From contig OZ038378.1 in the NCBI GenBank assembly GCA_964036045.1, forward strand, positions 97,774,001 to 97,838,000: a DNA stretch of 64,000 bases, in the 5' to 3' direction. The notes under the pieces are model-generated. The model saw nothing but the letters and a program-made list of their open reading frames with translations. It searched no databases and had not been told where the DNA came from. This DNA comes from Eutreptiella sp. 'Long Island Sound 2002'. Its lineage: Eukaryota; Protista; Euglenida. The position numbers and the translations under genes were made by a program. This document shows positions 1 to 58,599 of the stretch, in pieces. Position 1 is the stretch's first letter, and each line of letters starts with the position of its first letter.

Positions 1-153
1 AGTGCCCGCAACACCCAGAGCTCCGTCTCCGAGCTCGCCACCGTCATGCCATGCAAGCAAGCTAGCCTGCATACCTCTGCCTCAAGTCCCCCGAACGTTG
101 GTGAGCGCCGTCACTCCTCTGCTATTTATGAGGTGGACCCTGATGCGGTCTGA
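1..153 (+). CDS. Possible 3' end of an unidentified coding exon entering from the left edge
   Basis: Frame 1 is open from base 1 to TGA at 151-153 (SARNTQSSVSELATVMP...SSAIYEVDPDAV*). No recognisable domain. Confidence 0.2.
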   Translation, partial: SARNTQSSVSELATVMPCKQASLHTSASSPPNVGERRHSSAIYEVDPDAV

Positions 154-3641: not shown

Positions 3642-3704
3642 TTGCGAGCAACGTTGTTCACACCCCTTATTATTTGCCGTGGCCTTGTCCCCATACGGTA
3701 AAAG

Positions 3705-12800: not shown

Positions 12801-13425
12801 CTGGTTGACTGTGTGCGCGCATAATAGAGGTAGCAGAGATTGTACATACGCACATGCACATTCATACATGTGCAGATGCCAGGATGTACAAATATACATT
12901 GGTACTTGAGATGGCGGTGAGGGTGTGCGATGAGTCAGGTTAGCACCTTTTACTTGTTTTTCTGCCTGCCGTCTGCATACTGCTTGCAGCAATAATAGTG
13001 CATTGTAAACAGTGCCGGGACCAGAGCACCAACACATCTTCACTTCAAACGCAGTTGGGGGGATTTGCCTATTCCGACGTGTTGCATACAAATATACAAG
13101 AGATAGGGCTCTACGGTATGATGTGTTGGATAATTTCAGCAAAAGCCCCACCGACAGCCCCCCCCTCCCCCCCGGGTCTGCAACATACTTTGTGTTGAAC
13201 TCAGCACATACAGAATGAGGGTGCTGAGCTACCATCCGTGTGATTCCAAAAATGCTACTGGGGTTCATTAGATGCTCTAACAAGCGGTTTTAGCCCCCCC
13301 TCCCATGGGGATCTCCCCCATAGGTGATGGCCTTGGCGGGACGCGAACCCTTGAACAAGTACCTGACAACATCTCTGGTGCAATGTACCCTGGAGTGCCA
13401 CACATTCCCGTCACAACGCAGCCCG
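6888..13425. repeat. Four-copy tandem array of a ~1.63-kb unit
   Basis: Units are 6888-8520, 8521-10154, 10155-11791 and 11792-13425, near-identical. The junction cagcccg|ttttgttc has TT microhomology. Confidence 0.97.
7110..7480 (+). mobile_element. Decayed LINE zinc-finger/RNase H-like remnant, present in each tandem unit
   Basis: LLWGFLIQT...SPVCAQCGKMA*QTGAGHVQ*LFC, followed by TTLLYKDGS (YTDGS-like). Confidence 0.4.
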
Positions 13426-13633
13426 TTGGGATCTCTATCAGAAAATCAAAATCCGCCAGTTTGCCATGGATATCCTTTGTCAGGAATACATTCATGCCTT
13501 TGATGTCTCGGTGAGCGTAGGGGAATGGTTCATATTCGTGAAGCACCTGCAAGGCCACTGCCACTTCTCCGCACAAGCGCCACTGCGTGGGCTGGTCCAC
13601 TTCCCCACAGAAAAGGTCACTGACGTCTCCACC
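13363..13633 (-). CDS. Protein kinase, internal exon (subdomains V-VIII)
   Basis: Acceptor ctgcaatag|GGT, then GGDVSDLF...YAHRDIKGMNVFL...KLADFDF...GTPGYIAPEMLS, donor G|GTACTT. The 271-nt exon ends in phase 1 and joins the 6315 exon in frame (PEMLS-G-DGY). Upstream exons were not found. Confidence 0.9.
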
Positions 13634-14639
13634 CTATTGCAGGGCGACGTGTGAGGGACACAGTGGGTTGGAGGGCGAGGCAGGTGCCATAGACAACCTA
13701 CTTTGGAGGTGAGGCAGGTGTAGGTGTGCACACACTAGAAGAGGAGGCAGGGGGAGGGAAGGAATTTTTTTTGGTGGGGGCAGGGAGGGGTTATCCGGCC
13801 TGAACCCCCATCCTCCTATGATTGTCATTACTCACACTCCAAATTATATGTGCACCAACAAGCATCAACAAAACAAAGACCACGGCTATCAGAAAAACGT
13901 GCAGCACCTATGGTTTACCCACAGGGTCCAAGTGCATGCGATTATTGCTGAGAAATTGGTTCAGTGGGGAGAATCCTTGCACTGCGCAACTTTCAGACTA
14001 CCCCCCCCCCCACCGAAGAGCCCGAAACACATGCATTCCAAAACTCATACTCAAAAACCTGAAAAAAAAGGATCCGTCCCATGCTGCTTTCCCGTCAAGA
14101 ATTCATAGAAATGATGGATGAGGTTTTTGATGGATGATGCAGTAACACTTACGATTTAGTGTGAAAGGAGTCGAGCACCTCGAGTTCAGCCACTTGAAAT
14201 GGTGAACCAGCTCATACTTCACCGTGCAACATTATGCCTCATGGACCATTGGATCCCGAGTGTGTGCTACTGCCCCACAAGATCAGCAGCAACAAAGTTG
14301 TGATATGGTAGCCTTATGCGCCTTAGTAAAAGGGGTTGCTTTGGTTTTGTGATTGTTATCTATCCTTGAGAAAAAGAATATGTGCGGCCACCAACCGTGA
14401 GGGAAATGTTTCGTGCTCACAACATTTCTGACCCAAATTGTGTATCACAAGAGCAGCAACGTTGGATAGAGGAGGGTCCAAGGGGAGGGGGTATGCATGG
14501 TATGGAAGCAGTGCACAATTACGGCCACGTCCCCCTCTCCTACTCAAAGGAACACATGGTGCTGGAACGCACAGCATAGAAGGTAAAAAATGGCAGGAAA
14601 ATGCAGAGCATATTGCTCAGGATATTGGCGGATGCTCGG

Positions 14640-15195
14640 CATTTATCAGGGGGGGGGGGTAGAAAAAAAATTCCTGGTACCGGCGTACAACTTTTTTTTC
14701 GGGGGGTACCCCCGGAGGGGGAGGGGGGTACGAAAAAAAAATTCGCGCGAAAATTTTTTCCGGACCCGAAAACCTGAAATTTCCTAGTCTACCCCACGTG
14801 TGTGGGTTTGGAAGGTGCAAGGAGGGTATTTCTCAAGGTAACAAGGTAACCATGGATATCCGATATGGGTGGTATTTGTGTTTAAGGGCACAAAGACCCC
14901 CGGTCTGTTCCGGCTACAGTGCAGCGCCCCACCGCGGCCTCTTATCGGCAGGAAAGAGTCCCCAGATAAGGCAATACACCCTATCTGGGGCGAGAAACCG
15001 AACCCCCAGCATTGAAGGACAAGGGTGATTGATGTCCATTCTGGCCGTTCTGCAGGTTGCCCAAGCCTACAGTGGACCCCACAATGTCATGGCCCCATTG
15101 CCTTCTCGCATGCTGGTTGATGACCGCTACACCACACTAGCTTGCCAACAAAGATTGGTTCTCAGTGAGGGTACGGTTTGTGTGTTGGTGTGTTA
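14640..15195 (+). repeat. Diverged, internally deleted copy of the repeat family found at ~39580-40460 and ~42290-43170
   Basis: Shared blocks ctggtaccggcgtaca...cctgaaattt and gtgtttaagggcacaaagacccccggtc...cccattgccttctcgcatgctgg. Confidence 0.85.
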
Positions 15196-15229
15196 GTATG
15201 TTCGCTTTCATGTGCTTATTCTTCTTCGG

Positions 15230-15420
15230 AATTTGCTTCTTCTTCCGCTTCACGGCCCGCGTGTTGCTGCTGCTACTGCTCTGTTTGCTGCTGCTACCGC
15301 TGATGTTGCTGTTGTTGTTGCTGCTGCTATCATCGCTCCTTCGGCTACTGCTGTTGCTGCTGCTACTACTACTCTGACTGTTGTTGTCCTCGTCCTCGTC
15401 AAGGTCATCATCTGCATCAT
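15230..15420 (+). repeat. (GCT/GTT/ACT)n trinucleotide tract
   Basis: Seen directly. It explains the poly-L, poly-A and poly-S ORFs. Confidence 0.85.
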
Positions 15421-18400
15421 GTTGTTCCCAAACCGCCATGCGGCTGCTTTGTCTCCTGCCTTGAGGGCCTTCGCTGCCGCTGCTTGCTCTGCCACATTGT
15501 TTACATTGGCGAGAATGTCACGTTGCAACCTGGGCTGACGATTGCATTTAACAAGCGCTGTGGGAAGCCCGGCCCGCCCACCCGCGACAAGACCCGGCGG
15601 TAGGGTGGTACTTAGTGTTAGTCACTTCCATGTCACATGCCCAAAGCCATCGATACAAGTGTACCCTTGGCGTCTTCATTAGAAGCACCATGGATATAGT
15701 TTAATCAAATCATACCCTACTGTGTCATTAACAATAATCATCAAAATGGACAGCAACTGTTCCTTGTGATGCAGATTGTGTTAGATCATATTTTTCATCC
15801 ACATATTGATTTTTGTACACATTAGATTCTTTTTCAGAATCCAAAAATAAAATGACAAAAAGAAGGGAGCAACCAACATCACCACGTGCTACTATACCTG
15901 CTAAAGAAAAAAAAGTTTCTGTGTTTGTGCGATCTATCATTAACACAATACAAACTATGGAAACATAATATATATTGCAGCGACACTTTACCTATTTTCC
16001 AAATAAACACCAAATACAATCGGAAAGACATTTAAAAAAAAAAGACAACATAAAGGAATCCGTGGCATTAGGCTTGTGACTAGGCTTGGGAAGGACTCGC
16101 TATGCTCCTCCTTCCCAAGCCTAGAAACGCCTGAAGTCTCCAAAGTGACCGCTGCAGCTTTCGATGCAAACTTGACACCACCGACGAAAAAAAGTTGGGT
16201 GTTTCTTCTGCCAAAGCACGCAAAGAACAAAACTCACCTGCAATGCATGTCGGAGACATAGATCATGTTTGTTCCACTGCTTGAGGCTCGAGGATAGAAC
16301 GTTGCTGCTTGTAGAAAGGTGCACGTTTAATTAGCACGGTTTCGTTCAAAATGGATAGTTACAAAAATTGAGCCTGAACTGATTTTTTTACAAGAACAAC
16401 AAGCGCCCCTTTCTTCTCTACTATAACAATTGTTGAAGACCTGAGTCCACTATTTCTATTGGTTTTCGTTTCGTGCCTCAGGGAACCATTGGTTTGTTGC
16501 ACCGTCGTTCAGTCCCAGTCCCATGATTTTCGGTAGGTGACTGCTACCAACACACGTGCAAAACCTCCAACTTACAAAATACCCTAATTCCCTACTTTAG
16601 GTACATTGGGGGCTACATTGAATCATGGTCTTCCTTGCTATCTGCTATTGAATGGTTGCGGGACGTTGGTTTCATCGTGACATTGATGTGTTTGCTTCTG
16701 CAAGCGGTGGCTGGAGTCCGCTTGGCCTTTTGTTGGCCAATCACGGGGCGTGAGCCTCAAAACGTGCACACTATTGGACAGGCGGGATAGCGTTGTGCGT
16801 CGACAAAGATGTGGCCCACTCAAGTGGCGGGACCGGCTTCAAGTATTTTCCCGTGCCTCATAGGTGGTCGGGCGCGTTGTACAATTGTTCAGATTAGAAA
16901 GTTGAGAACTTACAACTGTTGAAAAAAGACCGACCTATGGAAGGTCTTAGATTTCATTTAAAAAAAATTCACATTTGATTATCAAAACCCGAACATTGTT
17001 CTGAAGATTCTCAAGGACATGTGCAACACCGCTCGCTTTCCTTGTGCTAGGGTGTACTTCCATGATGGCGGAAGCTTGTAGCATGGTGGTGAGTCACAGA
17101 GCCCTTGCTCCCCATGACTTGGGAGCACATTTTCATCTTCTTCTTGCACTACATTATGGCCCTCGGGCGTGTTATAGTTCAATCGTCATAGGGCCTTGGC
17201 ACCGAACGACGCAGCGTGCTACGGGTGCGGGCTCAAAAGGTCTTGGATGCCGCACGGCCTGGTGTTTCATTGGGGCGGTCCTTTTGCGTGGTGAAACTAG
17301 GAGTGAAAACGCCCACAGTTGAGACATAGTCATTCTAGTGGAAGAGGTTTTCCTGTTTTCAGTGGCACGGTCGGTAGGGCCAACTGCCCACAGGCCGGCA
17401 CCATGGGGCGCCCCCTCTTACTTCTTGATTGTGAGGCCTCGCGTTCCAAAATGTCGGTATTTCTCGTAAATTACCAATTTTGTATTGCGAGGCCTCTTAA
17501 TCGGCATGACAGTACTCCGCGTCTGCAAATAGGGAACACATGTCACACTCATGCAGCCGTTGAAATAAATGAGAGATGCCGCCTGCATAGAGCCAACAAT
17601 TGGCTATTGGGGCCATATTGGACATCCGCCATTTGCTCTGGGAACCATACCACACATTCCATTGTACGTCTGCGCCACAATTTTGTGGGCTTGCAAGGTG
17701 CTTCCGCGAACACATGGTTCCTCAATGGGTGCACACTACCACCTCTTCTCGGAGGAGGATTGCTGCCACGTCTTAGAGGCCCTCACCATGGGAGGAGGGA
17801 TACAACTAGCCAGAATATTGTGTAGTTCGTCAATCCGATCGTGAACATTGGGTACAATGTCACAACGCCCGTGGGGTTAGGGGTGCGGCCACGGGCGGAC
17901 CCATGGCGGCGCAAGGCCAATGTTCGGGCCATAGTGTGAGATCGTTGTATTATACAATTTTGCGGGCCCATCTCAAAAACACTTGGAACGGTTGAAAGAA
18001 TGGCCCTCCCTCCATTCCATCGGAATCACCTTGTCACAAGTGTGTGTCTCAATGCAATCAAAACACATAACACCTGACAATTGTCACAATAGTGCAATAT
18101 GCCAATGCTCGCCTCGTTGCAACGCAAAAAACAAATAATTCAAGGGCACCATCAGCCCCCACTGTGTAAATGACCATCACTCACTATAGGTGCATCCCAT
18201 GCATGTGCAAGCTATGTGGCAGCTTCCATACTTGCGGGTACATCAAGAGTGATTGCAACTGCACAAGCACTTGCACCCCTTCATTCAATGTAGTAGTGGT
18301 TTCCTCCGTTTGCTCGTTATTAGGCCCGGCGATTAATTAGGGTCTTTCAGCCAACAAAGAGCACAAACTATATGAAGGTCTCCCTTATACTGAGCCCACA

Positions 18401-21400
18401 CAAGCTTTGCACCCTTCGAGGAGCCTACCTCTCGCAGTAGCAGCAAGCACCCTAGCCGAGGTCAGCTTCGTCTTGGGGTTACGAAACCTGCAATTTCGGG
18501 CACTCCCTTGCAAGGCTATAGTTTCCTTCTAAAACGGTGGGTCCGCATTTCGTTTTCCGTGTTTGTTGCATCCACACGGCTGGCCATACTTGGTGATGTC
18601 GACATCCCGAAATGCAAAAAGGAAGGGAGGCGCATTTCACTCATGTTAGGTAAATCATTCGTCAATCACCATGTAGCGAAGTGCATTAAAGTTGCACCAA
18701 TCCCTGTTCAGCCCAAACACGTGCCACACAATGAGGTGTAAAGAATTCTTAGCTGTAACACGGTTATTCGCGTCAACCGTTCAACTGTGGGCAACAGTAG
18801 GGTCCATGGTTGCGAACGACACAAATGGGCAAAGTGCAGAGGCATATCGATGCTCGGGTAAGTGTGTGGGCAAACAATCAATTTTTTCGAAGCAAGAGCT
18901 TTGGCCGGCGGCTTTTGGCAAGAAGATGCGAAAACCATGGCACTCCGACAAAGGAGACCGGGCCGGTTGCTCTTAAAAGATATTAGTGGTTATGGCCTTT
19001 TGCTTGTACGAAAAAGAGCCACAAGAAATTGCCACGCCCGCCGTGATGTTTTTTTGGGAGGATGCATAAAGCCCACATTGTTGGTGGTCGTCCCCTTTCG
19101 CCCATATGAACTTGGTTCATGGCAATCGCCATGCCTCGTTGCCACGCTCCGTTTTGGTGTGTGTGCCGTACCCCATTAGCACGCCAATGACTAGCCACCA
19201 TGAGGAAACCAAGGCATGATAACTTTTGTGATGGTCGGCTAGCCAGGTGCACAAGGAACCGTCCGCCTGCCCGCCTTTTGGTCCTTCTCTTTTGCCCCCT
19301 TTTCGTTTACCCTCGCCTTCCCCTTGCCTTGTCACAGCAAGGTTTGTTGGCGCCTTCTTGGGGGACCACTTCTCTGTTTTCCTTCCCCCCCCCTCCGTGC
19401 TAGGGCAACGGCTGTTGTTGGTGTTGATGCCGTTGTTGTTGCTATTGTTGCGCCCACTAAAGCTGCTGAACATCTTGCTCCGTATCCTTGTCCGCTTGTA
19501 CGAGCTCACTTGCCCCCCAACGTCGGACCAAAACTTTAGGTGAGCCCCCGCATCAGGTTGCGGGCCCCCGCCGGAGCTGGCGGAAGGTGCACGTGCCGGC
19601 AAGGCTGCATCCGCTACGAAGCTTCCCCCCGGCTCTCCCACGAACTCCACGGGCATTTGGCCAAATGTAGGCGCAACTACTAGTGTGGGTGTGGTGCACG
19701 TTTGTATCAAGGCGCAACAACTTGCTTTGGCCCTGTGCACTAAAGCACAAAGGTTTGGCCATTCAATGGTGATGATAGCGCGCCGCATCGTGACAAAGTC
19801 TAAGGTCTTGTGTTGTGGTCAGGAGATGGTTCACAATGACGATGGAAAGGGGTATTCCTCGGATACCGCTGGTGGCTTGCGGTCACTCACTCATTGAACG
19901 CGCGATGTGAAACCGGTGCAAGAGATGGCGGTTTGTGGTGACGAGCGTCTTTGGGCGATGGGTAGGACCACCATGTCGGGGAACAGGTCAAAGTCCATGA
20001 CATCATCAAGGCACGGCCCATCAGCGCCCCGGGCATTCATGTGTGCTAGCTGCAGCAGGACTAGCATGGTTGTGGTCGTACGCATGGCCTCTTGCGCCAT
20101 GCTGAAGCTAGGAGTGCCAAGGCGGTCGCACCAGTGCTGCAAACGTATCACCTCCCACGATTGGGCCACGCAAGCAGCCACAAGCGCATGGATAGCATGG
20201 TGAACGGGGACGTGCCAAATAATTCTTTCTCCCCTAGGCTTGGGGATGAGGCATTTCTTGCCCTAAACCACCACGTGCGGCAACACCCCGATACTACAAG
20301 CTACAAACGTCCAAGCTTTGCGACTTACCAGGCTCTAAGTCCAAAACTGCGGCTGAGGGCCATTACATAGGCACCGGTGCTAGTACTCTTGCGTGGGCAG
20401 CTTGGTGAGCATCGGCACTCTTTGAAGCACATGCCCATAGGTTTAAAGGCCTCCGGGCTTTTTGGGCTCCCACATATTTGTGGTTGCGGGCGCCCTAGGC
20501 TAGCCATAGAGCTTTATGCATTTCTTGGACTTTGGGGCGTCCCGTAGGGCCGCCAAAGGACCACCACTAGCAATGAGAAGTGCTCCTCCTTTGGCTAGTA
20601 GTTCACGGCACCCGTTTGTGTACCCCATTGGCCACCAAGCCGAGCCTTTAGTAGTTACCTGTCTAGCGCCACCATCCCCACTACCGGCCGCATGTTACGA
20701 GATGCCACCATCCCCCGGTCCAGTGAGAAGTAATGCAGCCACAGCAAGGCCTAACGCTGTGGCCCTACACACAAGGCGTGAGCAAGTGGGTGGGGATCGA
20801 TCTAGTGAAGGGCCTTGACACAAATGGGTGCGGTTTACCCCTAAGGAGGCGTCCTACCGGGTGGAAGCACATTGGTGCTTCACCGTGGACAATGCGGCCG
20901 TCGCTAGACGACCAAAGGTTCCGGGGTTTCCGGGGGGAAGGGGGGGGGGGGCAAACCCAAAAGGGGCCCCCACACAGAATGATGGGGTAGCCAACCAAGT
21001 AGGCCGGAAGAAAGGAATAAATGACCCCCTGCTCCCAAAGACAACAACTCCACAATGGAGCTGTCACTGTGTCCACACGTGCGTAGAACCTATGGAGCAT
21101 TGCAATTGATTTGCCGACTGGACACACAAGCAATTTGGGTCTCTCAACCCCCCCCCCCCCTGGCTTGGATTGCCCCTTTGGGTGTCTAATGGGACATTTA
21201 GGTGAGACTTAGCCGTTTCGCGGACATGGACATGGGCGATCAAAGTCAGGCTCGGCACATCCCATGATGACTTAGAAAACACATAAAACCACCATGCCAA
21301 AGGGTTGCATGATTAGCTTGAAACACCAAAAAATATTGAAAGTAACTTTCACAGGTCAAAAAAAAGCCTGGTTTCTCTGGAGGCCATAAAGATTATTTTG

Positions 21401-45826: not shown

Positions 45827-46971
45827 GGTGTGGAGGTACATGCTCGAGGCCGACCACGGCGTAACTGAGGAGGAGTGCTGCTCGTGGCTTGCTTGTTGCT
45901 TCCTTACTTGCTTGTTAGCTAGCTCCTCCTCTTTGATCAACGGATCTTGACCCTCTGGCGGGGGGGTTCCTAGAAGTGTGGCTGCAGCGGGTATTGTTGC
46001 GGCGGTGGGTGGGGTACCGCTGGGGCGGTCCCATTCGAGGGTCCCAGATCAGTCCTAGAAAACCGTGTGCGTCTTCATGCGGTAATCCCACAGCCCCGCC
46101 TCGCGGTCCCAAGCCTCATGCGGCTGCTGCTGCTGCTGCTACTCATGTGCGTACGGCGGATATTCCTCGTGCAGCGGGTACTGTGGCGGGGACTGCGGCG
46201 AGTATTGCGGCAGGTACTGCGGAGGATAGGGCGGCACTAGCGGCCGCTGCAAGGGCATAGCTTGTGACATAGAATACATAGTAGATGCGGTGAACACGGT
46301 TGTTGTCCCCGGAGCCAAAACGAGAGACAGTGCCTAGAACGTCTAGAACGCGCACAACAATTAAGGAGGGCGCCAGGGACAGTCGAAGAAACAACGTGTA
46401 TGACCTGCGTAGCACATAAAGCAGCACACCTTGTGGCGCTTGCATGCTTGAAACTCTTGGAAATTGAACCGCCGCACCAGCCTCCACGTCTTCTGCTTGG
46501 GCTGGTGCTCTCGGTTTCGGGCATCACTTCGTTGCGGCGCTCTACTCTACTCCTGTTATCCTAGAGCCTAGGTGCCAGCCTTGTGAAATCAAACTTTCGA
46601 GCCAAAAACTCACCGGTGGCGCCCACGGGCGGGGGCGCCAAGTCCGGAGGTGCCCGGCCAAAACTGGGCCTTTTGTGCCCCAAACCAGCCTTTCGTGGCC
46701 CAAAATTGCCGCGCAACCCGGGCAAAACAGACAAAGAGGGGAAACAGTGGCTACACGCCACGTGCGCCACAATATGTCTGTGAAACGTCCAAAAATGGCC
46801 AAAAATAACCCCAATGGAGGGCCGTTGGTGTTGAACTACCCCGAAACCAAGAACGGGCCGTATCTTGCCCTGCTTGCCTCGAAACCTGATGCGGAGGGCA
46901 CCTAGTCCACCCGCAACCCCCCACTTTTTGTGGTTTTCAAGCCTCACCATCGCCCAACGAACCGCCTAGAC

Positions 46972-46999
46972 CTTAGGAGGCCCATAGTGCCCCCTATCG
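46972..46999 (+). repeat. Left terminal inverted repeat
   Basis: One mismatch to the reverse complement of 58342-58369, with weaker A/T-tract similarity extending inward. Confidence 0.9.
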
Positions 47000-47873
47000 C
47001 TTTTTCAAAAAAAAATTCATGTCGTGCACAGAGCCTAGCCTCTCTGCTGCATAGCCAAGCGTAACGGGGGGGTGCTTCCCAGCGTGGGTGTATGGGGAGG
47101 AGGAACGACACGCAATTTAGGGGTGCGAAGCAGCCAAAAGGCACCATTTTGGGCACCCACAGCATGCAAGCGCAACCACTGCTTTTTCCAATTTTGGAGG
47201 TCTGAGATACCGAAAATGGACCAATCGCACCATAAAACTATGTTTCACAGTCTGATATCACAAATGGAGCACGTAGTTGGCAACGGCACGTGCTGCGGTT
47301 CTTCTAGCACCCGTGGTATTGTAACGGCAATCATGACCTTACATGCACTGAGTGTGAAGAAGGTGTCCCCTATCACAACAGAGGCACAGCACCTGTACAA
47401 AAGGAGGGTGCAAGGCAGCATTTCTGAAAGGCTGGGCTCTGCGGAGCCCACAAACATGAAATTCACCAAAAACAGGGGAAACAGTACAGGGTTGTACACC
47501 AACACAACAATGTACCGGCAAACAGGTAGTAACAGGGCGGTAAATAGGGAATTCCTACTGGCTGGGCTCTGCAGAGCCCAGCTCAATACAAACACCACAA
47601 AGCACCCATGAATTACGCTATTGATAAACAAGCCAGACCACCAGTGTAGTAATGGCTACAATAGGCATCGGACTATACCCCCCCCCCCCCGCCCTCCCCC
47701 CCCCCAGGGGAAAAATATCCCGGTCCAATAAGCGATAGACCACTAGAGCACCGGTCATACACAAGGCATGGAAGCTGTACACACTAGTTGACGAGTCTAA
47801 GGCACGAACACACACAAAACAAGGCACAGAAGTTGTAAAAACCGTTATGTGCGCTGTGGGAGGTCCGCCAGAG

Positions 47874-48370
47874 CAACAAAATTGGATGCTGTATTGACTG
47901 CAGACTGATGTGTCCCCGGATGTGGTTCACAAGCACCAACTAACACCTGGCCACACAAAGACTGGTACCCCTTCTAAATTCCGAGCAAATGTTGAACTAT
48001 CGATAAATGGTTCACACCAACAAAAACCAGCCACAAATCGCATCAAAAAATTAAGCATCGCACAGTCGACAGTGTCAGGCCACTGTCCAACATACGCACT
48101 GTCAACCGCTGCAGAAATGGCCAGAACAACAAAATTGGATGCTGTATTGACTGCAGACTGATGTGTCCCCAGATGTGGTTCACAAGCACCCACTAACACC
48201 TGGCCACACAAAGACTGTTCCCCCTTCTAAATTCCGAGCAAATGTTGAACTATCGATAAATGGTTCACACCAACAAAAATCAGCCACAAATCGCATCAAA
48301 AAATTAAGCATCGCACAGTCGACAGTGTCAGGCCACTGTCCAACATACGCACTGTCAACCGCTGCAGAAA
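47874..48370 (+). repeat. ~250-bp tandem duplication inside the transposon
   Basis: acaacaaaattggatgctgtattgactgcagactgatgtgtcccc occurs at ~47874 and ~48125. Confidence 0.9.
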
Positions 48371-49180
48371 TGAAAAGACACAGGCCCAACAGATCAATGC
48401 AATTGAGCATAGATGACAGCGAGGAATAAAATGTGGCTCAGCGATAAAAAGCAAACCTGTGCCCAAACTACTGACTTGAAATTGGACTAAGGGCATACCT
48501 GGTAAACTCGAAATGACAGACACGTTCAGCTGAGCTCTGCAGGGCCCAGGAACGGGCAACAGATAATGTCAGGACCAAATCAGGGTTACAAAGGGCATCT
48601 GGACTTTGCAGTGCATGGACTGGTGAAAAAATAGCAAGAATTAAAGGATCTGGGGGTCATAGACACAAACCTGGCACCGTATGTGGACCACAATTGTGAG
48701 AAAACTCGACAGTTGGCACACTGTGTCAACGAGGTACGTACCAAAAGAAATGCCAGAGCACAATGTTGTGCTTATACAACCAAATTCACACAGGGACAAT
48801 ACTGCACTGTTGAGATGAAAGCAGCACTGCGTACCACCAGGAGGCATGCAAATTGGCCCGAAACAGCATTCTGGGCTCTGCAGAGCCCATCAGTACAAAA
48901 TTCTTCATATTCGGGGGCAAATCAAGCAAATCTGGCAAGCTGGGCTTTGCAGAGCCCAGCTCAATGCAAATTAAAAAATGAGCGCCAAATTCAGCCACAA
49001 ACACGTACAGCGTCAAACAGGCACATCACTCACTGTCCCACAACCATTTGGGACTGCACAGGACAGGCCCAGTCCCATCAGGCGCTCAGAAAACCAGCAC
49101 AGTAACACGGTTGCGTCTGTGGTTGTATGTCCAGTACGGTCCAGCGACAGTCATGATCCAGCGGTATGTGGGGCCTCCAG

Positions 49181-50529
49181 TCACTTGCCGTTGCTCTTGC
49201 CGTTGCTCTTGGACAAGCCAACCCGGACACCACGTTGCAGGGTGGCCTGCAGGCCCTCCGCTGCCCTGTTTTTCTGCGATGGGGACGCCCCAGCGGCTGC
49301 CGTTGCCAACTTATCCTCCTCTTCTTTCCTCTTGCGATTTGCTCGTTCGTCCTCTTTTGCCTTTTTCTCCTTCTCCTTCTCCTCCTTTTTACGTTGCTTC
49401 TCCCGTGCCTCCTCTTGCTTCCGCAACTCGCGCTCAGCCTTCCCATGCTCTTTTTGCCGCTGCTTTTCGGTGTTTCTCCCCTTTGGCTTGGGAGTTTGCG
49501 GATCCGGCACCTCCTCGACTTCTGACTCACTCGTGTCCGCGTCTGCTGCCTGATCAGGGGACTCTTGCTGGAACAGCGGCTGCCCGGTGCTTGCCCAGTG
49601 CGTGACACTCCGCCACTCAACATCCTCCTCCGTGTCCCCTTTCCGGACGATCGTCTTCAGCAGGTTCACCACATCAGCTGCATTGTAGGGACCATCAGAT
49701 AGTACACCCCATGCACAATTCAACGGGACAGGAAAGTGAATACAGCCCAAACTGATCAGGTCGGGGCGGCGGCCATAGTACAGTGCCCACAGGCGGCGCG
49801 ATGCATCACCATCCATGTGCGTGTCGTCAGAGTCGTCGTTGGGGTCCTCCAGCAAATTCACCAACCACCACAAAATAGCCAGACCCAGCCACAGACCTTC
49901 AGTGAACGACTTTTGTGTGAGGAAGTGCGGCACTGCAGGGCCCAGCCCATGGGTCTTCACAAGGAACAAGGTTGACTGCTCAAACAAATCTGGCTCTTCT
50001 CGGCGCCCCAGGTGGTACAGAGCCATGCGCAAAGCCGTTGGGTACAAATCTTCCAATTGCGAGCGCAAGTGTTGTTCCACAGCGACCAAATCCCCATGGT
50101 GTCCATGAAAGGCGCCAAGTACCCCTTGAGACAGCACACGCACGATCTGCGCACCAGGGATCCACCCTCCAAGCCGCGGGACTTCAACAATGACGACATT
50201 GTACTTCAGCATTTTGATCTCATTTGGCACTGCGGTCACCGATCCATCGTACGCCCAAATTTCTCCAGATTCTGACCCCTTGCCAACATTGACCTTTGCC
50301 ACCTCGCCACCAGACACCTCAACAGCTGGGTGCAACACTAGTCTCACAAGCAGTCTGCGATGGGCTTCGACATCTTCTCGATCGCTGACCCATAGACCTG
50401 CCTTCAACGGCGCCTCGAGCGGTGGCCAGGGCGTGCTCTCGCTGTACTCCCAGCTCCCTTGCCATGCACCGAAATTCGCCAGACGGTGACTAAACTTCTT
50501 TGAGATGCGAGCCACTTCAGTCTTTGTGC
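49181..50529 (-). CDS. Cargo gene, last exon (~449 aa: unknown globular region plus acidic and K/E/R-rich tail)
   Basis: Uninterrupted ORF. A strong polypyrimidine acceptor (cttccctcctgccctcctctatggctcctgtacacacag|GC) is phase-compatible with the donor at 51761. Confidence 0.7.
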
Positions 50530-51761
50530 CTGTGTGTACAGGAGCCATAGAGGAGGGCAGGAGGGAAGCGATCCACCAAGTCACAGCGATCTGGCAAAGC
50601 GTAAATTTGCATTTTGTTGGATCCTGGGCTCTGCAGAGGCCAGTAATGTCAAATTGGTAACATGAAGGCCAAAATTGGTCACTGTGGTTCATCTTGGCAC
50701 TGCATTGCCCAGCATGACTAAATTGGCAACTTAAGGGGGTGGCGTGGGGGGGGGGGGGTCGTGGGACATCAATAGGCCAGGCCGGAGTGGTCAACAGGTC
50801 CAGCGTCCAGGAAGCTTCAACAGGTCTAGCGTCTCTGTACATGCAGTCAATTGGCATCCCAGGGGATCCTGGGCTCTGCAGAGCCCAGAACTCTCTAAAT
50901 GGTAATATGGCGTCTGAAATTTGGTCAACTCCCTCGATCTGGGCTCTGCAGAGCCTAGCATGACGAAAACGGTGATACAGGGGGTGTCCCGGGGGGGGGG
51001 GGGGGGGCTTGGACATCATTAGGCAACAGTGCACCGGTAATCGGGAGTGAAGTTGCGGAAGTTCGGACAATCCAACAGATCCAGTGTCTCTGTACATGCA
51101 GTCAATTGGCATCCCAGGGGATCCTGGGCTCTGCACAGCCCAGAACTGTCCAGATGGTAATATGGCGTCTGAAATTGGTCACCTCCCTTCATCTGGGCTC
51201 TGCAGAGACTAGCATGACCAAATTGGTGATTTAGGGGGTGTTCCGGGGGGGGGGGGGGTTGGGCATCATTAGGCAAGAGTGCACCGGTCATCAAGACTGA
51301 AGTGGCGGAAGTTCGGACAATCCAACAGATCAAGCGTCCCTGTACATGCAGTCAATTGGCATCCCAGAGGATCCTGGGCTCTGCAGAGCCCAGAACTCTC
51401 CAAATGGTAATATGGCGTCTGAAATTGGTCAACTCCCTCCATCTGGGCTCTGCAGAGCCTAGCATCACCAAAATGGTAAATTAGGGGTTGTCCCGGGGGG
51501 GGGGGGGGGGCTTGGACATCATTAGGCAAGAGTGCACCGGTCATCATGAGTGAAGTTGCGGAAGTTCGAACAATCCAACAGATCCAGCGTCTCTTTGCAA
51601 GCTTGCATGCAGTCAATTGGCAACCCACGGGATCCTGGGCTCTGCAGAGCCCAACAGACCCAAACAGTCACACTGAAATTGGTCATTACACTTCATCCAA
51701 GCTCGCCGTCGCAACGGCCCAATCACAACAAAAGGCAGGGGCTTACAAAGCAATAGCATAC
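50530..51761 (-). other. Predicted 1232-nt intron built from ~250-bp palindrome-doublet units with poly-G/C runs
   Basis: C|GTATGC donor and CAG acceptor, both phase 1. Unit periods are 245-261 bp. Confidence 0.6.
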
Positions 51762-52868
51762 GTCGTGAAGGGTGGATGCGCTCAACCGGCATGCCGGGAT
51801 GACCAAAGTGATACAGCCACAACTCCCCAGCGCGGAGCTCCTTTGCCAGCTTCTGGAAGCCCGGTACTGTACTCTTCGGCGAGGCCATGTAGTTGCATAC
51901 GCGCCACAAATTGTCGGGTTGCATTCCAGCAAAGCATCGCATTGTGTAAAGGGCAATCACCTGCTTGCGTTCCACCATCTTCCCGAGTGCGTCCGTGAAG
52001 GTGGCACCACAGGTCAGGGCCATATGGGCAGCTGGCCTCATTTGCTTGACGATTGTCTCCGTGTTCCTGGACTTTGCAGTCAGCCCGCCTCCACGATTGC
52101 CTCACACATCAAGGTGACAACTGTCTTCTTGCATTGTGTGTCCTCCGCCGCCAGTTGTAGGAAATTGTTCAACAGTTGGGGTACACTGCTCTCACGCCCA
52201 CTGTGCTGCGCCCTATTGTGTTGTCCGGCCAGCTTTCGCCTGATCTCGACGGATGTATCAAACTTGATGATGCGCACGTCAAAGTTAGTCATCCAGTCCT
52301 CGACCTCGCCCATCCTTGCTGTCACATCCTTGCAGATTTCATCACACGCCGCAACGCCGTGTTGGCCTCCAATCACCCACAGGGCTCCCACTGAATACAG
52401 CAGCATGGCACGTCACACAGGGCAGGCCACGTAGCCAATTACGCTGATCGAGTTGCGTCGCAACAATCCCATACCTTTGTCTTCCCAAACCAGAAGCTGC
52501 AGTCGGCCATCGGGGGGGTTTGCTAGTAGGTCCTCCTTCACCTCCGCCACGTGGTCCCAATCAATGAGCCTGGATTGGCCATACTCCATGCACCTGTCAA
52601 TCTTCAGTTCCTTGCGCGGCACCTTCGCTCTCCGCACCTACACGTAGTTTTGAATGGCCAGTACGGTTGTGGAGTCCTTGATACTGCCCATCTTCCTGGC
52701 GACACGACCGTTGTTCACCACTTGCGAGGGAGATTGACTGGCCTGGCTGGCCCCAGCAATAGTGCTGCCCTGTACAGCATCCTCTATGGAGGGCTCTGAC
52801 TGCAGTGCGTCCACTTTCTCGGCTTCCAGTGTGTCCATCGCTGGTGTCTCAGCGGTGTTGCCATCCAT
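51762..52868 (-). pseudogene. Cargo gene, 5' exons: ParB/Srx (DGQHR-like) domain protein with one in-frame TAG and one frameshift
   Basis: ATG at 52868, TAG at 52640-52638, then YGQSRLIDWDHVAEVKEDLLANPPDGRLQLLVWEDK. An 84-nt GT-AG intron (52474-52391) follows, then VGALWVIGGQHGVAACDEI...KLAGQHNRAQ. A 1-nt frameshift lies near 52083. Confidence 0.65.
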
Positions 52869-53379
52869 GGCAACGTCGTTTGGTATGTCACACATGGTCC
52901 AAAAACACACGGACTTTACAGGACAAATCAAGTCACCAAAAACAGCACAACAATCACACAGTTCAGAGCATCAATGGTGGCAAATGGCAGATTTGGACAG
53001 CAAATTAGTCGGATCAAAGCAAGCAAATTGGCACCCACATGGGTTGAAATAGCCAAAACTGTCTTCAAAACAGCAAATCACTGCAGAGGCACCTCAAGTA
53101 CAATGTCCAGGGCACATTGATGGTCACAGCATCAAACAGGCCCACTAAAACGTCACTCGTTGACACAGGTATGAAGCAGCTGGAAAATTGGGCCTGTGCA
53201 AATGGCCTGCAACACCACAGCCAAACCTGCTTGTGGCAATTTAACTCCAATAATCATAACAGTGAGTACAACAGTGCCAGGCACACCTCTTCGAGGGTCA
53301 CACAGGCTGACGCAGCGGGTGCACACTATAATACGAAAGAATGGAGATGTGTGCACAGATCAAAGCACGAAGATGGCAT

Positions 53380-53870
53380 GGTCCAGGACTGGCCCAGCCC
53401 TAAGAAAGGAACAGCAAATGACCAGATGGGAGTACATATCGGGCAGTGGCGACAGGCTCGGCTCTGCAGAGCCCAGAGTAACCACAACCGGTAATACGAC
53501 CCCTTAAAACTCAGTGTCAGGCAAAGGTGGGCTCTGCAGAGGTACAGTGATAGCAGGGGTGTAAACATCAAATTTGCCTGTCGGGGGGGGGGTTGCATTG
53601 CCACCCCCCTCGATGAGCAGTCTGAGTCTATGAAAGCAACAAGAAAGCGACTGAAAATGACCAGATACGGGTACATATCAGACAGTGGAGACCGGCTGGG
53701 CTCTGCAGAGCCTAGAGTGTCAAAAACCAGTATTACAACCCCTGAAAACTCAGTGGCGGAGAAAGCTGGGCTCTGCAGAGCCCAGACTCTTGGGCAACAA
53801 TAACGGGCCTATACACAGCAGATTGGGCTTTCTTGGGGGGGGGGGGTCTGCATTGCCACCCCCCCCCGGT
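53380..53870 (+). repeat. 239-bp tandem duplication, each copy with a palindrome doublet and a G-run/C-run hairpin
   Basis: aaatgaccagat...tacatatc...ggctctgcagagcc occurs twice. ggggggggg ttgcattgcca cccccc lies at ~53583 and ~53835. Confidence 0.85.
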
Positions 53871-53871
53871 A

Positions 53872-56006
53872 TTAGTCCGAATCTATCAGGTCAAATTCAC
53901 GCAACCCCTCACTGAGCACAACAGGTACAGGGCCATCAGACAGGGCATCAACATCTACAGCATCCCTCGCCCGGATCACAGGTACGCCATCCTCAGGGGG
54001 GGCACGCACATGATCAATGAATATTGCATTTGGCACTGGGGGAACAATGTGCTCCATTGCAATTGGTATGAGCCCAACTCTTTCTACAGCTGCCCGGGCC
54101 TCGCGGCGGTTCACAGGTGGCCTAAGTGGGATATGTTGACGTATGTAAGCCATGGCATCATCGCGGAGCCCTTGTCCACCTACTAGGGTGCGCAGAAAGC
54201 GCTTTAGAATAGATTTCATGAACACAACTGTTAGGGTACCCCCGGTTCCCTTTTCGGGGAACACGTACGTTGTGTCTCTTTCTGCCTCAACCACACTAAC
54301 TGGACCCGAGGACCATCGCACAGTTGGATGCTCCTCCCGTCTTGCACCACGCATGAGTGCCCATACCCTGTCGCGCACCTCAACACACACACTTTCGGAG
54401 AGGGACTCCGTTGCACGTGCCACTGACGGGGGGGCATGGTGCGGAGTAGGGCACCAGCCTCATCAGCCGTGTGCTTGTCGGGGTGTTGCTGGCACCGTGC
54501 CCGCAATTTTGCAAGCAGGGCCTCACAACATTCCTCCACATGGGCAGCACCAAGCGTGTCGTCGTGCCATTGTGTATTGTACAGAAGTGCACAGCATATG
54601 GTACGGACATAGTTCATTTTTGCTGCAGCTGGACGAGCTAGGTCAACAAGCAGACCCACGCGGCGTTGGAGTACGCACGTGGCCACTATACCAGTCCCGT
54701 CGGCGCGCCTAGTCCAAGTGCAATTGGGCACTAAGTGTCCTACTACAAAGATGGCTGGGAGGTAATAATTCAGGAGGGATTCAAGGCCCCGAAGGGTGCG
54801 CAACCCATCTTGTGTGTTTAGGGCTGCTTGGTTGGCGCGTCCCTCAAACAGGGTAATTTTCTGCCGAAGTTGTGCCCGTATGTCCGGGGCTGAGAGAAGG
54901 AGGGCAGCGATGGTTTTCTCTATTACAATGAGTTTGGGATGGTTATATATGCGCGCACCGGCCCCAAACACGGGAGCGGTGATGTACGAAAACCGAGGAA
55001 AGAATTTACGCCAAATGATATTGCAAACATGTTTGTAGGGGTGCCAGAGGCCGTAAATCAACGAGATACCCCGCAACCAATCCGGAAAATTCCAATCAAT
55101 GGTTGCTCTACAGTACAAAAATTTGAGCACCCGGTCGTGGATGTTGCAATCAACGAGCAATGCCATAGCTTTTTGACAACGCCGTTGGGTAGTGCGTAGC
55201 ATATCGAGGAGATCCAAGAGCTCTTGGTTCTGACCTGTACGGGACTCATATATGCCGAATGGCTTCCAAACGAGTTGCTGTCTACCAGCCTCCCGGGCAA
55301 CATCGAGGGGGGCACGGATGGTTCTCCGAGAAATGGGTGTATTGCACATATCAGTGCACACCTTCAACATTTCTCTGTGTTGTTGAACAGCTGCCATGGC
55401 CACTGTGTCCACCCGGTCCACTAGGTCACGCAGACTCGGGTGGCCAAGAAAATGAGGAAGGGGGGTTGTGTGCAACACCGCTATGGCGGTCACATCTAGA
55501 CAGACATTGGGTTTCACCGGATTGGCCCGAAACTGGGCATGCCACCAGTTGTCCACCCACACCACAATATCACGGCGAACAATAATACGCCACAGTTTCC
55601 GGAACTGCAATGCCCCCTGGTGTGCAATAGACAACCGGGATGGTTTGGTGAGACCAGCGTGCACCAGCTTGCGGCTGTCTGCCCGCATTACAGCAATGGT
55701 GCTCTCACCACTGGGGACGGCCGCTTGTGGCAACGCCATGCGACACATCCCCAGCCATACATAATAGGCCTCCTTGGAAAAATTAAGTAGCCAACGCGGC
55801 CATTGTTTTCGTGCCAACACCTTGCGAATGCGGTCGAGCGTAATGCGGGTCCGCTTGTTGACACGTAGACCCGCACAGAATTTTATGAATTCCTTCGCCA
55901 CACCATGGCGCACAGCCGACAATATCATGTGGCGACCAGTGCGCCATTGTGTCGTACAAAGAGACCGCATGTAGCTGACATGCAACGACATAGAAATCGG
56001 TGCCAT
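53872..56006 (-). CDS. Putative DDE transposase (DUF6589/Academ-like or KDZ-like), with a 1-nt frameshift in a homopolymer at 54428-54434
   Basis: 591-aa ORF with WVDN (~55550), LLVD (~55150), YGLWHPYKH (~55045) and HVEECCEALLAKL (~54535). It continues in another frame as the 183-aa ORF 53872-54423 and lies inside TIRs with a TSD. Confidence 0.65.
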
Positions 56007-56295
56007 AGTTATAAGACAGTCCGGGTGGCAAAACAGGAAAAGGTGGTGACCAGAACAGGTAACTAGAGGCGTAGACTAGCACACAAAAGGGGGCATAATG
56101 GGAAGTGGTGAAGGTCTGGGCTCTGCAGAGCCCAGCGTCCCGTAATCAGTAATGGCGGGCTTTGTAATAGACAAAGGAAAAACGGGGAGGGACGTGCCAC
56201 GAGAAAGTAATCGAGAAGGGGTAAAAGTAGCATTTGGCGCAAGCTGGGCTCTGCAGAGCCTAGGGTCCCGAGAAATGATAGTTGGGGGTTCATAC

Positions 56296-57041
56296 CACCC
56301 ATTTGGGGAGTAGACCAACCACTTCATGCATCACAGAGTTTTCCGGTATTTGGCCGGGGGCATATCAGGTAGTAATGACCACCGTGACCGATACCGACCA
56401 TCCTTCTTAACCGGGATAGTAGATGGTTGTGCGGGGGCAGATGAAGCCACATCCGGCGACAATCCTACATGCGCATGTGGCAAAAGTGAGTACCTGGGGG
56501 TATGTCGGTTGTCCGCATAAGCGGCAGTGGGCAACAGAGAAGTGCGCGGGGGTTGATGCAGGAGGGAACTCCTTGGGGGTAGTGCATTATCAGCCAGGGG
56601 CAGCGGGGCCCTAACTGACCGCCTACCACTGGAGGTGACGGAGCTGTGCCTCAGGGCGGGGGGGGTGCCTCGATGTGGTACAGTCACTGGTGGCAACAGG
56701 CTGTATTTTGACTGCCCACCGGTGCGGTCTGCTTCCACGGGTAATGGAAGGGACCTTACGTGCTGGCGATGGGAGGGGTGCCGATCAATCTGTGTAAGTG
56801 TGGGTTGGTCGGCATCCGGGGGAGGAAGTGGCCGAGGAGGTGGGATACGGGGATGGGGAGACAACTCAACAGGGGGACGTGATTGTGGATTCAGTGTGTC
56901 CAGGATCAATGCAGCTCGCTCCTCGCTGCGTGACAGAAAATGGGATCGGCATATCCGATCCCCTTGTTGCCATGTGACGAGGGGTTTGCGCATTGGGTTC
57001 CGCAATGCAAAACGGAATCGTGCACGAAGCCCCCAAATGTA
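56296..57041 (-). CDS. Pro/Arg-rich upstream exon, probably part of the transposase gene
   Basis: Acceptor gtgcag|TAC, in the same frame as the 591-aa ORF. Donor TG|GTATGA at 56295 and acceptor gcatgtcag|C at 55975 give a 321-nt in-frame intron. One TGA lies at 56333-56331. Confidence 0.4.
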
Positions 57042-58341
57042 CTGCACGAATCAATGTGGCTGGTCACCACTGTTGTCCCTCAGCAACTCCATTGTCTTTG
57101 GAGTCAATGGGTCATTGAGGGAGGCCTTTGGTGGGGTTGGCTGGTCCTTGGGGACAAGCTTTGGTGGCCGCGGTGGGGATGGGGGTGCTGACCCGGTAAA
57201 CATAATCGCCTCTTACCCGGCGAGCGTAGCTGTAGCACGAGCTGCTGTTCCACTGGTTGATGGGACCGGTAAGGGTACAGGTCCTACAGCCTCATCTCCC
57301 TCAGTATCCTGGCCGGAACCCGGTACATCCACCTCCGTACGTCTAGCATGTGGGAAATCAGCCATGGCTGCTGTAAAAGGAAGATAGCATGTTACATGTA
57401 CTTAATATACGGGACGTATGACCAGATAGTAAATGTACGAGCACTGCACAGTATGCAAAAAAACCAACTGCAATAGATTAGGGTATATTGCAAACAATGT
57501 GTCCTCAAACTCCCATAGCATCGGACGCACCACAACAATAGAAACACTACCCCACTGGACCCTGTTGGACTACACTGCGTGCAAACAGTCCAAGGCTTGT
57601 TGCAGCTCACTCCTGAATGGCGACTGTCATACTTACACAATGCCACGGGTGCACCATTGTAATACACGATACAACAGCAACGCGGCAGAAACGCATAGAA
57701 AAAAATACTACCAGACCACATGTTGAATACGTTTCGAAGTGTCATAGCGCTATTATGTCACAGAAAAGGGGGCAAAATGGGAAGTTGTGAAGATCTGGGC
57801 TCTGCAGAGCCCAGCAAACAGGGAGACCCTAATAAGCACCCCTCAAGCACCAAATTTGTGAACTCTGGGCTCTGCAGAGCCCAGGTTGTTAAAAAATCCT
57901 AATATAAGCCTTGTTTAGGCAGTTCCATCTAGATTATGTGATGCCTTGTGTGGTAAGCGTCTTGGATCATTGCCCACTGGTAGTGTATGTAGGAGTTGTA
58001 TCCTTGTATACTGTTACTATTGACCTATCCGGGGACAATGTTTAGGTTGAATATGTTACAATGTCAACGAGAGTATACCACTTAACCCAGCGCCATATTG
58101 CGTGGCCAATTGACCACTGTATACATGTGCCGATTGTTGTACCGGGGGTAGGTACAGAGGGTATAACTTGTAACCTGGGCTCTGAAGAGCCCAGATATCT
58201 AAGATGTGTAATATTGGGGCCAGAAATGACTTACACAGCTGGTCTGGGCTCTGCAGAGCCCACCCTGATTAAAAAATGCAAATTTGAACCCCCATTTTAC
58301 CATACGCAAAACATCACCCATCACCCCTTTTTTCGCTAAAA

Positions 58342-58369
58342 CGATAGGGTGCACTATGGGCCTCCTAAG
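58342..58369 (-). repeat. Right terminal inverted repeat
   Basis: Partner of 46972-46999. Confidence 0.9.
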
Positions 58370-58599
58370 TAGACCCCTGCACCATTGGTCCCTTGGTGGA
58401 GCTGGAGGGCAGCACGGCCCGCGGACGATGGGGGCCAACGGTGGGTCTGCCAGGGTCCCCGTGGCGAAAAAAAATCATTTTTTCCAAAGTTGTTCCTAGA
58501 CCAATTGGGATGCTCAAACAAGTGCTTTTAGGCCGTTTTGAGCCCGTGGTGACGCGGTGTGTGCCATGCAAAATCCCAAAAAGCCTTGAAAATGTGCCG

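Follow-up and report, generated by a model that had tools for sequence, protein, structure and literature searches.

Eukaryotic cut-and-paste transposons are recognized by terminal inverted repeats (TIRs) at both ends and by a target-site duplication (TSD) of fixed length at independent insertions, and this length differs among the described groups: 3–4 bp in Academ and usually 8 bp in hAT, with TTAA duplicated in Kolobok. The large autonomous En/Spm (CACTA) element (TnpA/TnpD) combines a transposase with a separate accessory DNA-binding protein whose short motif recurs many times sub-terminally, partly as inverted pairs. Multigene TIR elements with DDE transposases are found in protists and fungi, among them the Kyakuja-Dileera-Zisupton (KDZ), Academ and Kolobok groups. 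TSDs of 7–8 bp are generated by KDZ elements and TSDs of 5 bp by the hAT5 families (PMC12730594), and the P element transposase has the signature D230, D303, a [C/D](2)H motif at D339, an insertion domain at residues 339–528 and E531 (PMC8230255). The present analysis concerns a stretch of 64,000 nucleotides from Eutreptiella sp. 'Long Island Sound 2002' (assembly GCA_964036045.1, contig OZ038378.1, positions 97,774,001–97,838,000, forward strand), hereafter called the window. Positions 46972–58369 of the window very probably represent a decayed copy of a 10–12-kb class II DDE cut-and-paste transposon that belongs to an unplaced lineage and in which one of four genes, gene B, encodes the transposase. 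The features that define this lineage are its CTTAG ends, its 5-bp TSD, its transposase family and a companion gene, gene C.

A first-pass annotation of the window had proposed an 11,398-bp insert with CTTAG termini and a duplicated TAGAC, and the arms and the pentamer were both found where it had placed them, the distance from TIR arm to TIR arm being 11,398 bp (Table 1). The two 42-nt arms are 88% complementary, and in their outermost 28 nt, CTTAGGAGGCCCATAGTGC[C/A]CCCTATCG, 27 of 28 positions match between the arms. This 28-nt end sequence occurs at two sites in the whole window, both at the ends of the element, against none expected from shuffled sequences. Further copies were taken from one ENA assembly (ERZ25074135) with the longest open reading frame (ORF) of the window (54231–56006, minus strand) as a query, which identified many proteins of 75–92% identity on Mb-scale contigs; all 12 loci fetched lie on such contigs of this single assembly. 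Four of the loci (L001, L002, L010 and L011) contain complete copies with the CTTAG...CTAAG ends of the window copy, unrelated flanks and perfect 5-bp TSDs. The five full copies, that in the window included, are collinear over their entire length with 91–97% identity, and their differences are mainly a variable count of internal tandem units and a few deletions. The chance of a matching 5-bp TSD is 1/1024 per copy and a match was observed in five of five, so that the duplications are not attributable to chance. Copies that extended beyond the TIRs or lacked a 5-bp TSD had been named in the annotation as grounds for abandoning its proposal; all five full copies retain the TIR ends and a perfect TSD. 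Both marks of a cut-and-paste element, inverted repeats at the two ends and a TSD of fixed length at independent insertions, are therefore present. Two further loci (L003 and L004) contain the left end and are rearranged or truncated. Among the transposase proteins, clusters of 83 and 25 members were found together with singletons; the gene C proteins form a cluster of 99 members with approximately 60 further matches. These cluster sizes suggest a copy number of roughly one hundred or more in one genome.

The same ends recur in a second family of the same genome, whose transposase is 33% identical to that of the first over 483 residues. Its complete copy (L012:5606–12798, 7,193 bp) is flanked by the TSD TTGTG, is bounded by a 24-nt TIR, CTTAGACGAACCAAGTGTCCACCC, with 96% complementarity, and contains a homologue of gene C as well as an intact transposase ORF of 697 aa; an internally inverted copy (L007) ends at position 3704 with the TIR of this second family. 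The TIRs of the two families can be aligned without gaps and have in common CTTAG and seven further positions. A 5-bp TSD was found in all six copies examined (five of the first family and one of the second), each with a different sequence. Because CTTAG and the 5-bp TSD recur in a family with a transposase of only 33% identity, they are features of the lineage rather than accidents of one family.

The gene B protein has the residues expected of a DDE enzyme. The DN..D..GxWH..E motif reported in the first-pass annotation maps to the conserved residues D147-N148, D281, G314/W316/H317 and E486/E487/E490, and conservation scored over 153 representatives of the family shows that these and several other positions are nearly or completely invariant (Table 1), with the exception of H321 of an H317-x3-H321 pair, which is present in 60 of 138 representatives. 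A confident AlphaFold model built from a 37-sequence alignment (predicted local distance difference test score [pLDDT] 84.5; predicted template modeling score [pTM] 0.79) has an RNase H-like core in the order strand-strand-strand-helix-strand-helix-strand, and the helix that carries the invariant glutamates comes after a helical insert of approximately 130 residues. This arrangement in the model corresponds to that of DDE transposases whose catalytic helix is separated from strand 5 by an insertion domain. A profile search over 1.84 billion cluster representatives (clusters at 50% identity) identified 1,452 representative clusters of relatives at E≤1e-3, of which 899 reach E≤1e-10 and 274 reach E≤1e-30. 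All 10 of the relatives that were looked up are metagenome proteins without a name, and some relatives are derived from lake metagenomes, as judged by their record names. Two peptide patterns detected no relatives in IMG/VR or in the prokaryote genomes of GTDB.

No family in Pfam, NCBIfam or PHROGs matches the gene B protein. In addition, 37 diverse members of the family had no match in Pfam, including its hAT dimerization, BED, THAP, P-element, MULE and KDZ models. Even at E≤10, the family profile was without a match among PDB sequences, despite the solved structures of Hermes, P, RAG1, Transib, piggyBac and others, and a single-sequence PDB search was likewise negative. Pfam models are lacking for several named superfamilies, which makes the absence of a Pfam match weak evidence of novelty. 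Taken over all four proteins of the element, no named family in Pfam, NCBIfam, PHROGs, PADLOC or PDB gives a match, which is consistent with a new lineage, and no matching description of the element was found in the full-text literature searched.

The four genes, A to D, are all located on the minus strand in the window, and the single-strand order reported in the first-pass annotation is borne out by four gene-sized ORF blocks. The same annotation held that the genes appear spliced, which is correct for gene C only, with its one GT-AG intron of 84 nt; gene B is an uninterrupted ORF of 706 aa in intact copies. Removal of the gene C intron restores the reading frame, and an intron-less homologue of gene C in a third family (L013) lacks exactly this segment. 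In the window, a private 1-nt deletion near 54424 splits gene B into two ORFs (54231–56006 and 53872–54423), the missing base being one G that is kept in all four other copies. Genes A and C of the window copy contain private stops or deletions as well (Table 1), and the four other copies share none of the inactivating changes in genes A, B and C, although L010 is missing 632 bp of gene A that include the positions of both window stops. On account of these private frameshifts and stops, the window copy is dead as an autonomous element; it could be moved only with enzyme supplied by intact copies, and the enzyme gene is intact in L010 and L011. The proline-rich gene A protein has no match in Pfam, PHROGs, NCBIfam, PADLOC or PDB, and gene A was not found in related families. 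For the gene D protein, low-complexity matches only were obtained in Pfam, PHROGs, NCBIfam and PDB, and no homologue was found in related families. The ORF of gene D can be extended upstream to 51136 through palindrome repeats, a part that is probably not coding. The window copy also contains a private tandem duplication downstream of gene D, the 253 bp of which are absent at this place from the other four copies.

Table 1. Features of the window copy, of the other complete first-family copies and of the gene B protein (n/n, representatives with the residue among those scored)
Reference	Feature	Position	Strand	Details
Window	Left TSD	46967-46971		TAGAC; identical pentamer at 58370-58374
Window	TIR, downstream end relative to genes	46972-47013	+	42 nt; starts CTTAG
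Window	Sub-terminal palindrome pair	47432-47581		Sites 47432 and 47562
Window	253-bp tandem duplication	47867-48372		Tandem Repeats Finder (TRF), 2.0 copies, 97% identity; private to window copy
Window	Palindromes downstream of gene D	48530-48959		Sites 48530, 48871 and 48940
Window	Gene D	49181-50474	-	ORF of ~429 aa; K/E-rich C-terminal tail; ORFs in window, L001, L010 and L011
Window	Intergenic array, genes C-D	50624-51654		Eight palindrome sites
Window	Gene C exon 2	51613-52390	-	Conserved core; private 1-nt deletion near 52087
Window	Gene C intron	52391-52474	-	84 nt, GT...AG; read in L002:13416-13499 and mapped to window
Window	Gene C exon 1	52475-52931	-	ORF extent, putative start; private premature stop 52640-52638
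Window	Palindromes downstream of transposase gene	53457-53785		Site 53457; pair 53696 and 53766
Window	Gene B, probable DDE transposase	53872-56006	-	Single 706-aa ORF in intact copies P0023, P0027 and P0035
Window	Palindrome pair, genes A-B	56116-56263		Sites 56116 and 56244
Window	Gene A	56331-57365	-	344 aa, proline-rich; two private premature stops (57215 and 57053)
Window	Two sub-terminal palindrome pairs upstream of gene A	57795-58263		57795/57865 and 58175/58244
Window	TIR, upstream end relative to genes	58328-58369	-	Partner of 46972-47013
Window	Right TSD	58370-58374		TAGAC; directly outside arm
L001	Complete copy	7483-18716		11,234 bp; TSD ATGTA
L002	Complete copy	7442-19265		11,824 bp; TSD AGAAG
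L010	Complete copy	8215-18528		10,314 bp; TSD ATCAG
L011	Complete copy	7607-18787		11,181 bp; TSD TTTAT
Gene B protein	Conserved residue	D147		WxDNW; 125/125
Gene B protein	Conserved residue	R226		RxPLDxxR; 133/134
Gene B protein	Conserved residue	D230		RxPLDxxR; 133/135
Gene B protein	Conserved residue	D281		LLVDxN; 142/142
Gene B protein	Conserved residue	W316		GVWHxYK; 139/140
Gene B protein	Conserved residue	H317		GVWHxYK; 136/138
Gene B protein	Conserved residue	E358		131/132
Gene B protein	Conserved residue	R422		99/99
Gene B protein	Conserved residue	E486		81/83
Gene B protein	Conserved residue	E487		81/81
Gene B protein	Conserved residue	E490		81/81
Gene B model	Helical N-terminal region	1-136		
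Gene B model	Strand 1	142-151		Carries D147
Gene B model	Strand 2	165-174		Followed by helical insert
Gene B model	Strand 3	243-248		Followed by helix
Gene B model	Strand 4	276-280		D281 immediately after, then helix
Gene B model	Strand 5	309-313		W316-H317 immediately after
Gene B model	All-helical block	~354-471		
Gene B model	Helix with invariant glutamates	487-502		

The non-coding parts of the element are marked by a repeated palindrome of 20 bp, CTGGGCTCTGCAGAGCCCAG. With up to two mismatches, 22 sites were identified in the window, all 22 of which are confined to the element, the 52.6 kb of flanking sequence being free of them, and L001, L002, L010 and L011 contain 21–23 sites each, all between their own TIRs. 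They occupy the intergenic stretches and the regions close to both ends; in the window, most form pairs 69–70 bp apart, and a distance of 68–70 bp is frequent across families; the spacer inside the pairs is not conserved from unit to unit. The first site past the transposase gene of the window copy is located approximately 90 nt after the stop codon. Part of the array between genes C and D (50818–51653) consists of 3.3 tandem units of 250 bp, each with a palindrome pair 69–70 bp apart and a run of at least 13 G, and the number of units varies between copies, L002 having 605 bp more and L010 259 bp less than the window. Other families have palindromes of their own, again only inside the element: CTGGGCGCGATCGCGCCCAG in L005 and L006, where a pair lies approximately 100 nt past the stop codon of the enzyme gene in the same layout as in the window; CTATCGAAATTTCGATAG at 18–20 sites in L012 and L007; and GTCCGCGAAAGTTCGCGGAC in L009. 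The outer CTGGGC...GCCCAG is common to two families, and the center differs yet stays palindromic. Paired sites can base-pair in a transcript, which is a trivial consequence of their identity. Most likely, the palindromes are binding sites for a dimeric protein encoded by the element or hairpin signals for its transcripts. The idea that the TIR contains a half-site of the palindrome was retained as no more than a lead, the resemblance being too short to judge with two families; the TIR positions common to both families argue that recognition of the TIR is for the most part independent of the palindrome. In L005, a further palindromic motif, GGTGTTTYTCAACACC, was observed (positions 663, 1192, 1212 and 3612) just past stop codons and upstream of the main palindrome, and it may be a separate 3′-end signal. 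In the second family, the palindrome also lies inside an apparent intron of the gene C homologue (L007:6226–7416 [P0280] and L012, approximately 9559–9896), where the ORF reads through as ...CPIEISIRL...

Gene C is the only companion gene besides the transposase that is retained across related families, and its homologues adjoin the transposase gene in two further families: the second family of the same genome (L007 and L012) and a third family from another sample (L013:3861–5045, minus strand), in which the gene is divergent from the enzyme gene and the relationship is supported by an hhalign probability of 93%. This retention makes gene C a likely accessory factor for transposition or its control. 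In the window copy, the conserved core lies in exon 2 (GALWVIGGQHG ... LAGQHNRAQHSGRE), and across families it reads G(A/C)LWV(I/L)GGQH ... LAG(Q/H)HNR(A/S)(Q/S)H.G.E. The first-pass annotation had called this cargo ParB-like, and it is conceivable, though quite unlikely, that gene C encodes a DNA-binding protein or nuclease of the ParB/Srx fold that reads the palindromes in the manner of parS, as part of a partition-like or silencing module. A pattern resemblance is present, in that the order of blocks (a hydrophobic strand, G-G-Q-H-x-x-x-A and then LAGxHNR) recalls the N-terminal domain of ParB; the palindromes of 18–20 bp are family-specific and multi-copy, as expected for sites that co-evolve with a dimeric binder, and gene C is the sole companion kept with the transposase. 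However, no ParB-clan model or structure matches gene C in any library or profile search: Pfam was without a match at E≤10 for the proteins of the window family and at E≤1 for their homologues in the second and third families, PHROGs, NCBIfam and PADLOC were likewise negative, two PDB profile searches gave no ParB match, and tblastn on 72,556 plasmids was also negative. A comparison by hhalign with P1 ParB, of low power as a single ParB sequence was used, returned a probability of 0.4%. The motif GGQH(G/A/F) lacks the arginine of the ParB GxxR, and L013 contains gene C without a repeated palindrome. An AlphaFold model of gene C (read-through copy, shallow alignment; pLDDT 34) is uninformative on the fold. 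On the sequence comparisons made, the ParB reading of gene C is unsupported.

The fold predicted for the gene B protein bears on where the enzyme might be placed. When the model was compared with PDB by Foldseek, transposases ranked highest, although as weak matches: that of the Drosophila P element came first (6p5a; E 5.9e-3, probability 1.00), followed by Hermes of the hAT superfamily (4d1q, 6dww and 8sjd; probability up to 0.91), with ISCth4 (6xg8_B; probability 0.25) and RAG1 (6dbo_A and others; probability 0.07–0.25, ranks 28, 35 and 37) scoring lower. The best match among viral models was a Pandoravirus hAT-family protein, with nothing convincing in BFVD. Since P, Hermes and the Pandoravirus protein are the top fold matches, the element could be a very divergent branch of a named superfamily, most plausibly P or hAT (hAT5), or could already be present in Repbase or Dfam, a reading that we consider unlikely without being far-fetched. 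As in the P element, an RNase H-like core is split by an insertion domain made up entirely of helices, which separates strand 5 from the helix of the catalytic glutamate, and an x(2)H motif stands right after strand 5, with a spacing of approximately 33–36 residues from the second aspartate to the motif (PMC8230255). The differences from P comprise the TSD (7–8 bp in P, 5 bp here), the distance between the first and second aspartates (73 residues in the P element transposase, 134 here; PMC8230255), the number of genes (one in P, four here), the ends, the N-terminus, which is helical here and has no THAP domain, and the lack of any sequence match. The [C/D](2)H motif that unites the P/hAT/MULE/Kolobok group is recognizable by H317, which is at the expected place, but the position of C or D is taken by a glycine (G314, two residues ahead of W316) in 134 of 141 representatives and is never C or D. 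With hAT, the enzyme has in common a first aspartate in a D-x-W-type motif (WxDNW here) and an invariant tryptophan near the start of the insertion domain. However, CAG/TAG-type and YARNG-type ends are absent, no C-terminal dimerization domain or BED finger is found in the 37 family members, no PDB sequence is matched, and the element has several genes, among them a conserved companion of the transposase; the 5-bp TSD alone fits, and it fits hAT5. The failure of these 37 members to match Pfam and of the family profile to match solved transposases further argues against a place in P or hAT.

Transib and RAG-like elements also generate 5-bp TSDs, as in the six copies found here, and they possess a DDE core with an insertion domain; RAG1 chains are among the fold matches, and the H317-x3-H321 pair occurs in the family. 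A position as sister of Transib within the CACTA-Mirage-Chapaev-Transib group is nevertheless very improbable: the termini are CTTAG and not CAC..., the probabilities of the RAG1 matches are below those of P and Hermes, no Transib transposase structure is among the top 50 matches, H321 is kept in fewer than half of the representatives, and no sequence match to the RAG1 or Transib chains in PDB was obtained. The KDZ, Academ and Kolobok groups resemble the element in being multigene, but their TSDs differ and the Pfam KDZ model is not matched. The En/Spm system serves as a working analogy only, since it differs in its transposase family, its 3-bp TSD and its CACTA ends, and since the sites described here are perfect palindromes of 18–20 bp that are found in every intergenic region and also close to the ends. 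It is hardly credible that the locus arose by segmental duplication or that it is an integrated virus or virus-like element, as its size (11.4 kb) and its several genes of unknown function could suggest. At least five copies are located at unrelated sites, homology breaks off precisely at the TIRs and every copy is flanked by a 5-bp TSD of its own, and on these grounds a virus or a segmental duplication was rejected; in addition, no capsid, polymerase or packaging gene was detected, two peptide-pattern scans of IMG/VR found no transposase relative, and BFVD gave no convincing match.

Several observations weigh against the interpretation of the locus as a transposon of a new lineage. The joined-flank sequence expected of an empty site has no match in JGI metagenome contigs, and neither excision footprints nor polymorphic insertions were observed, so that mobility is deduced from the copies and their TSDs; the TIR sequence likewise has no match in these contigs, which hence contribute no extra copies. 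The putative catalytic triad was placed by sequence and by the secondary structure of the model. No fold match reaches E≤0.001, and the TM-scores for the P element transposase are low (0.28/0.41); given these values, the link to P and hAT rests on ranking and topology. Two short relatives (L008 and L013) are without palindromes, which may therefore not be universal. Finally, the statement that the lineage is unnamed covers Pfam, NCBIfam, PHROGs, PADLOC, PDB and the literature searched, with Repbase and Dfam outside that scope; within it, the element probably represents a new lineage at the level of a superfamily.

The element is thus best read as a cut-and-paste transposon, and its parts may be connected as follows. 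The gene B protein would bind the CTTAG inverted repeats of approximately 42 nt, probably via its helical N-terminal domain, and excise the element, which would then be inserted at cuts staggered by 5 bp to give the 5-bp duplication. Gene C would assist or regulate transposition, genes A and D may be family-specific passengers or accessories, and the palindromes would function as protein-binding sites or transcript signals. In this scheme, the cutting chemistry, the pairing of each protein with its site and the functions assigned to genes A, C and D are inferences. A wider proposal, to which we give somewhat less than even credence, is that the element is the first described member of a superfamily widespread in poorly sampled freshwater protists and characterized by CTTAG ends, a 5-bp TSD, a P/hAT-like transposase without sequence relationship to P or hAT, a conserved companion protein and, in each family, an array of its own perfect palindromes that co-evolve with a binder encoded by the element. 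If this is true, the element would contain a self-contained recognition system that controls transposition or the expression of its genes.

With regard to the genomic setting, the contigs are Mb-sized and of low coding density, with at least one intron of the spliceosomal type. LINE-like (long interspersed nuclear element-like) ORFs with endonuclease/exonuclease/phosphatase and RVT_1 domains adjoin copies of the element (L001:1–4302 and L010:18513–19457), and 18 long ORFs outside the elements have no Pfam match. No Rfam match was obtained in the window, and no relic of a dinoflagellate spliced leader was found. The ratio of observed to expected CpG is 0.60–0.73 in the window, L001, L010 and L012 and 0.60 in the element, with an excess of TpG/CpA of approximately 1.3, a combination that suggests cytosine methylation in the host.

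Few superfamilies of eukaryotic cut-and-paste transposons are recognized, and any addition to them is an independent example of an RNase H-like enzyme adapted to cut and join DNA. A family of 1,452 clusters that has no name in the libraries searched, and whose members have so far been found in metagenome assemblies only, points to a blind spot in the annotation of protist repeats. The combination of a fold between P and hAT with a Transib-like 5-bp TSD bears on the relatedness of these enzymes, and the companion gene together with the family-specific palindromes offers a directly testable case of co-evolution between a protein and its sites. The intact enzyme genes of L010 and L011, in copies that belong to a set of 91–97% identity, make activity testable as well, and an active transposon with a cargo of 11 kb could serve as a tool.

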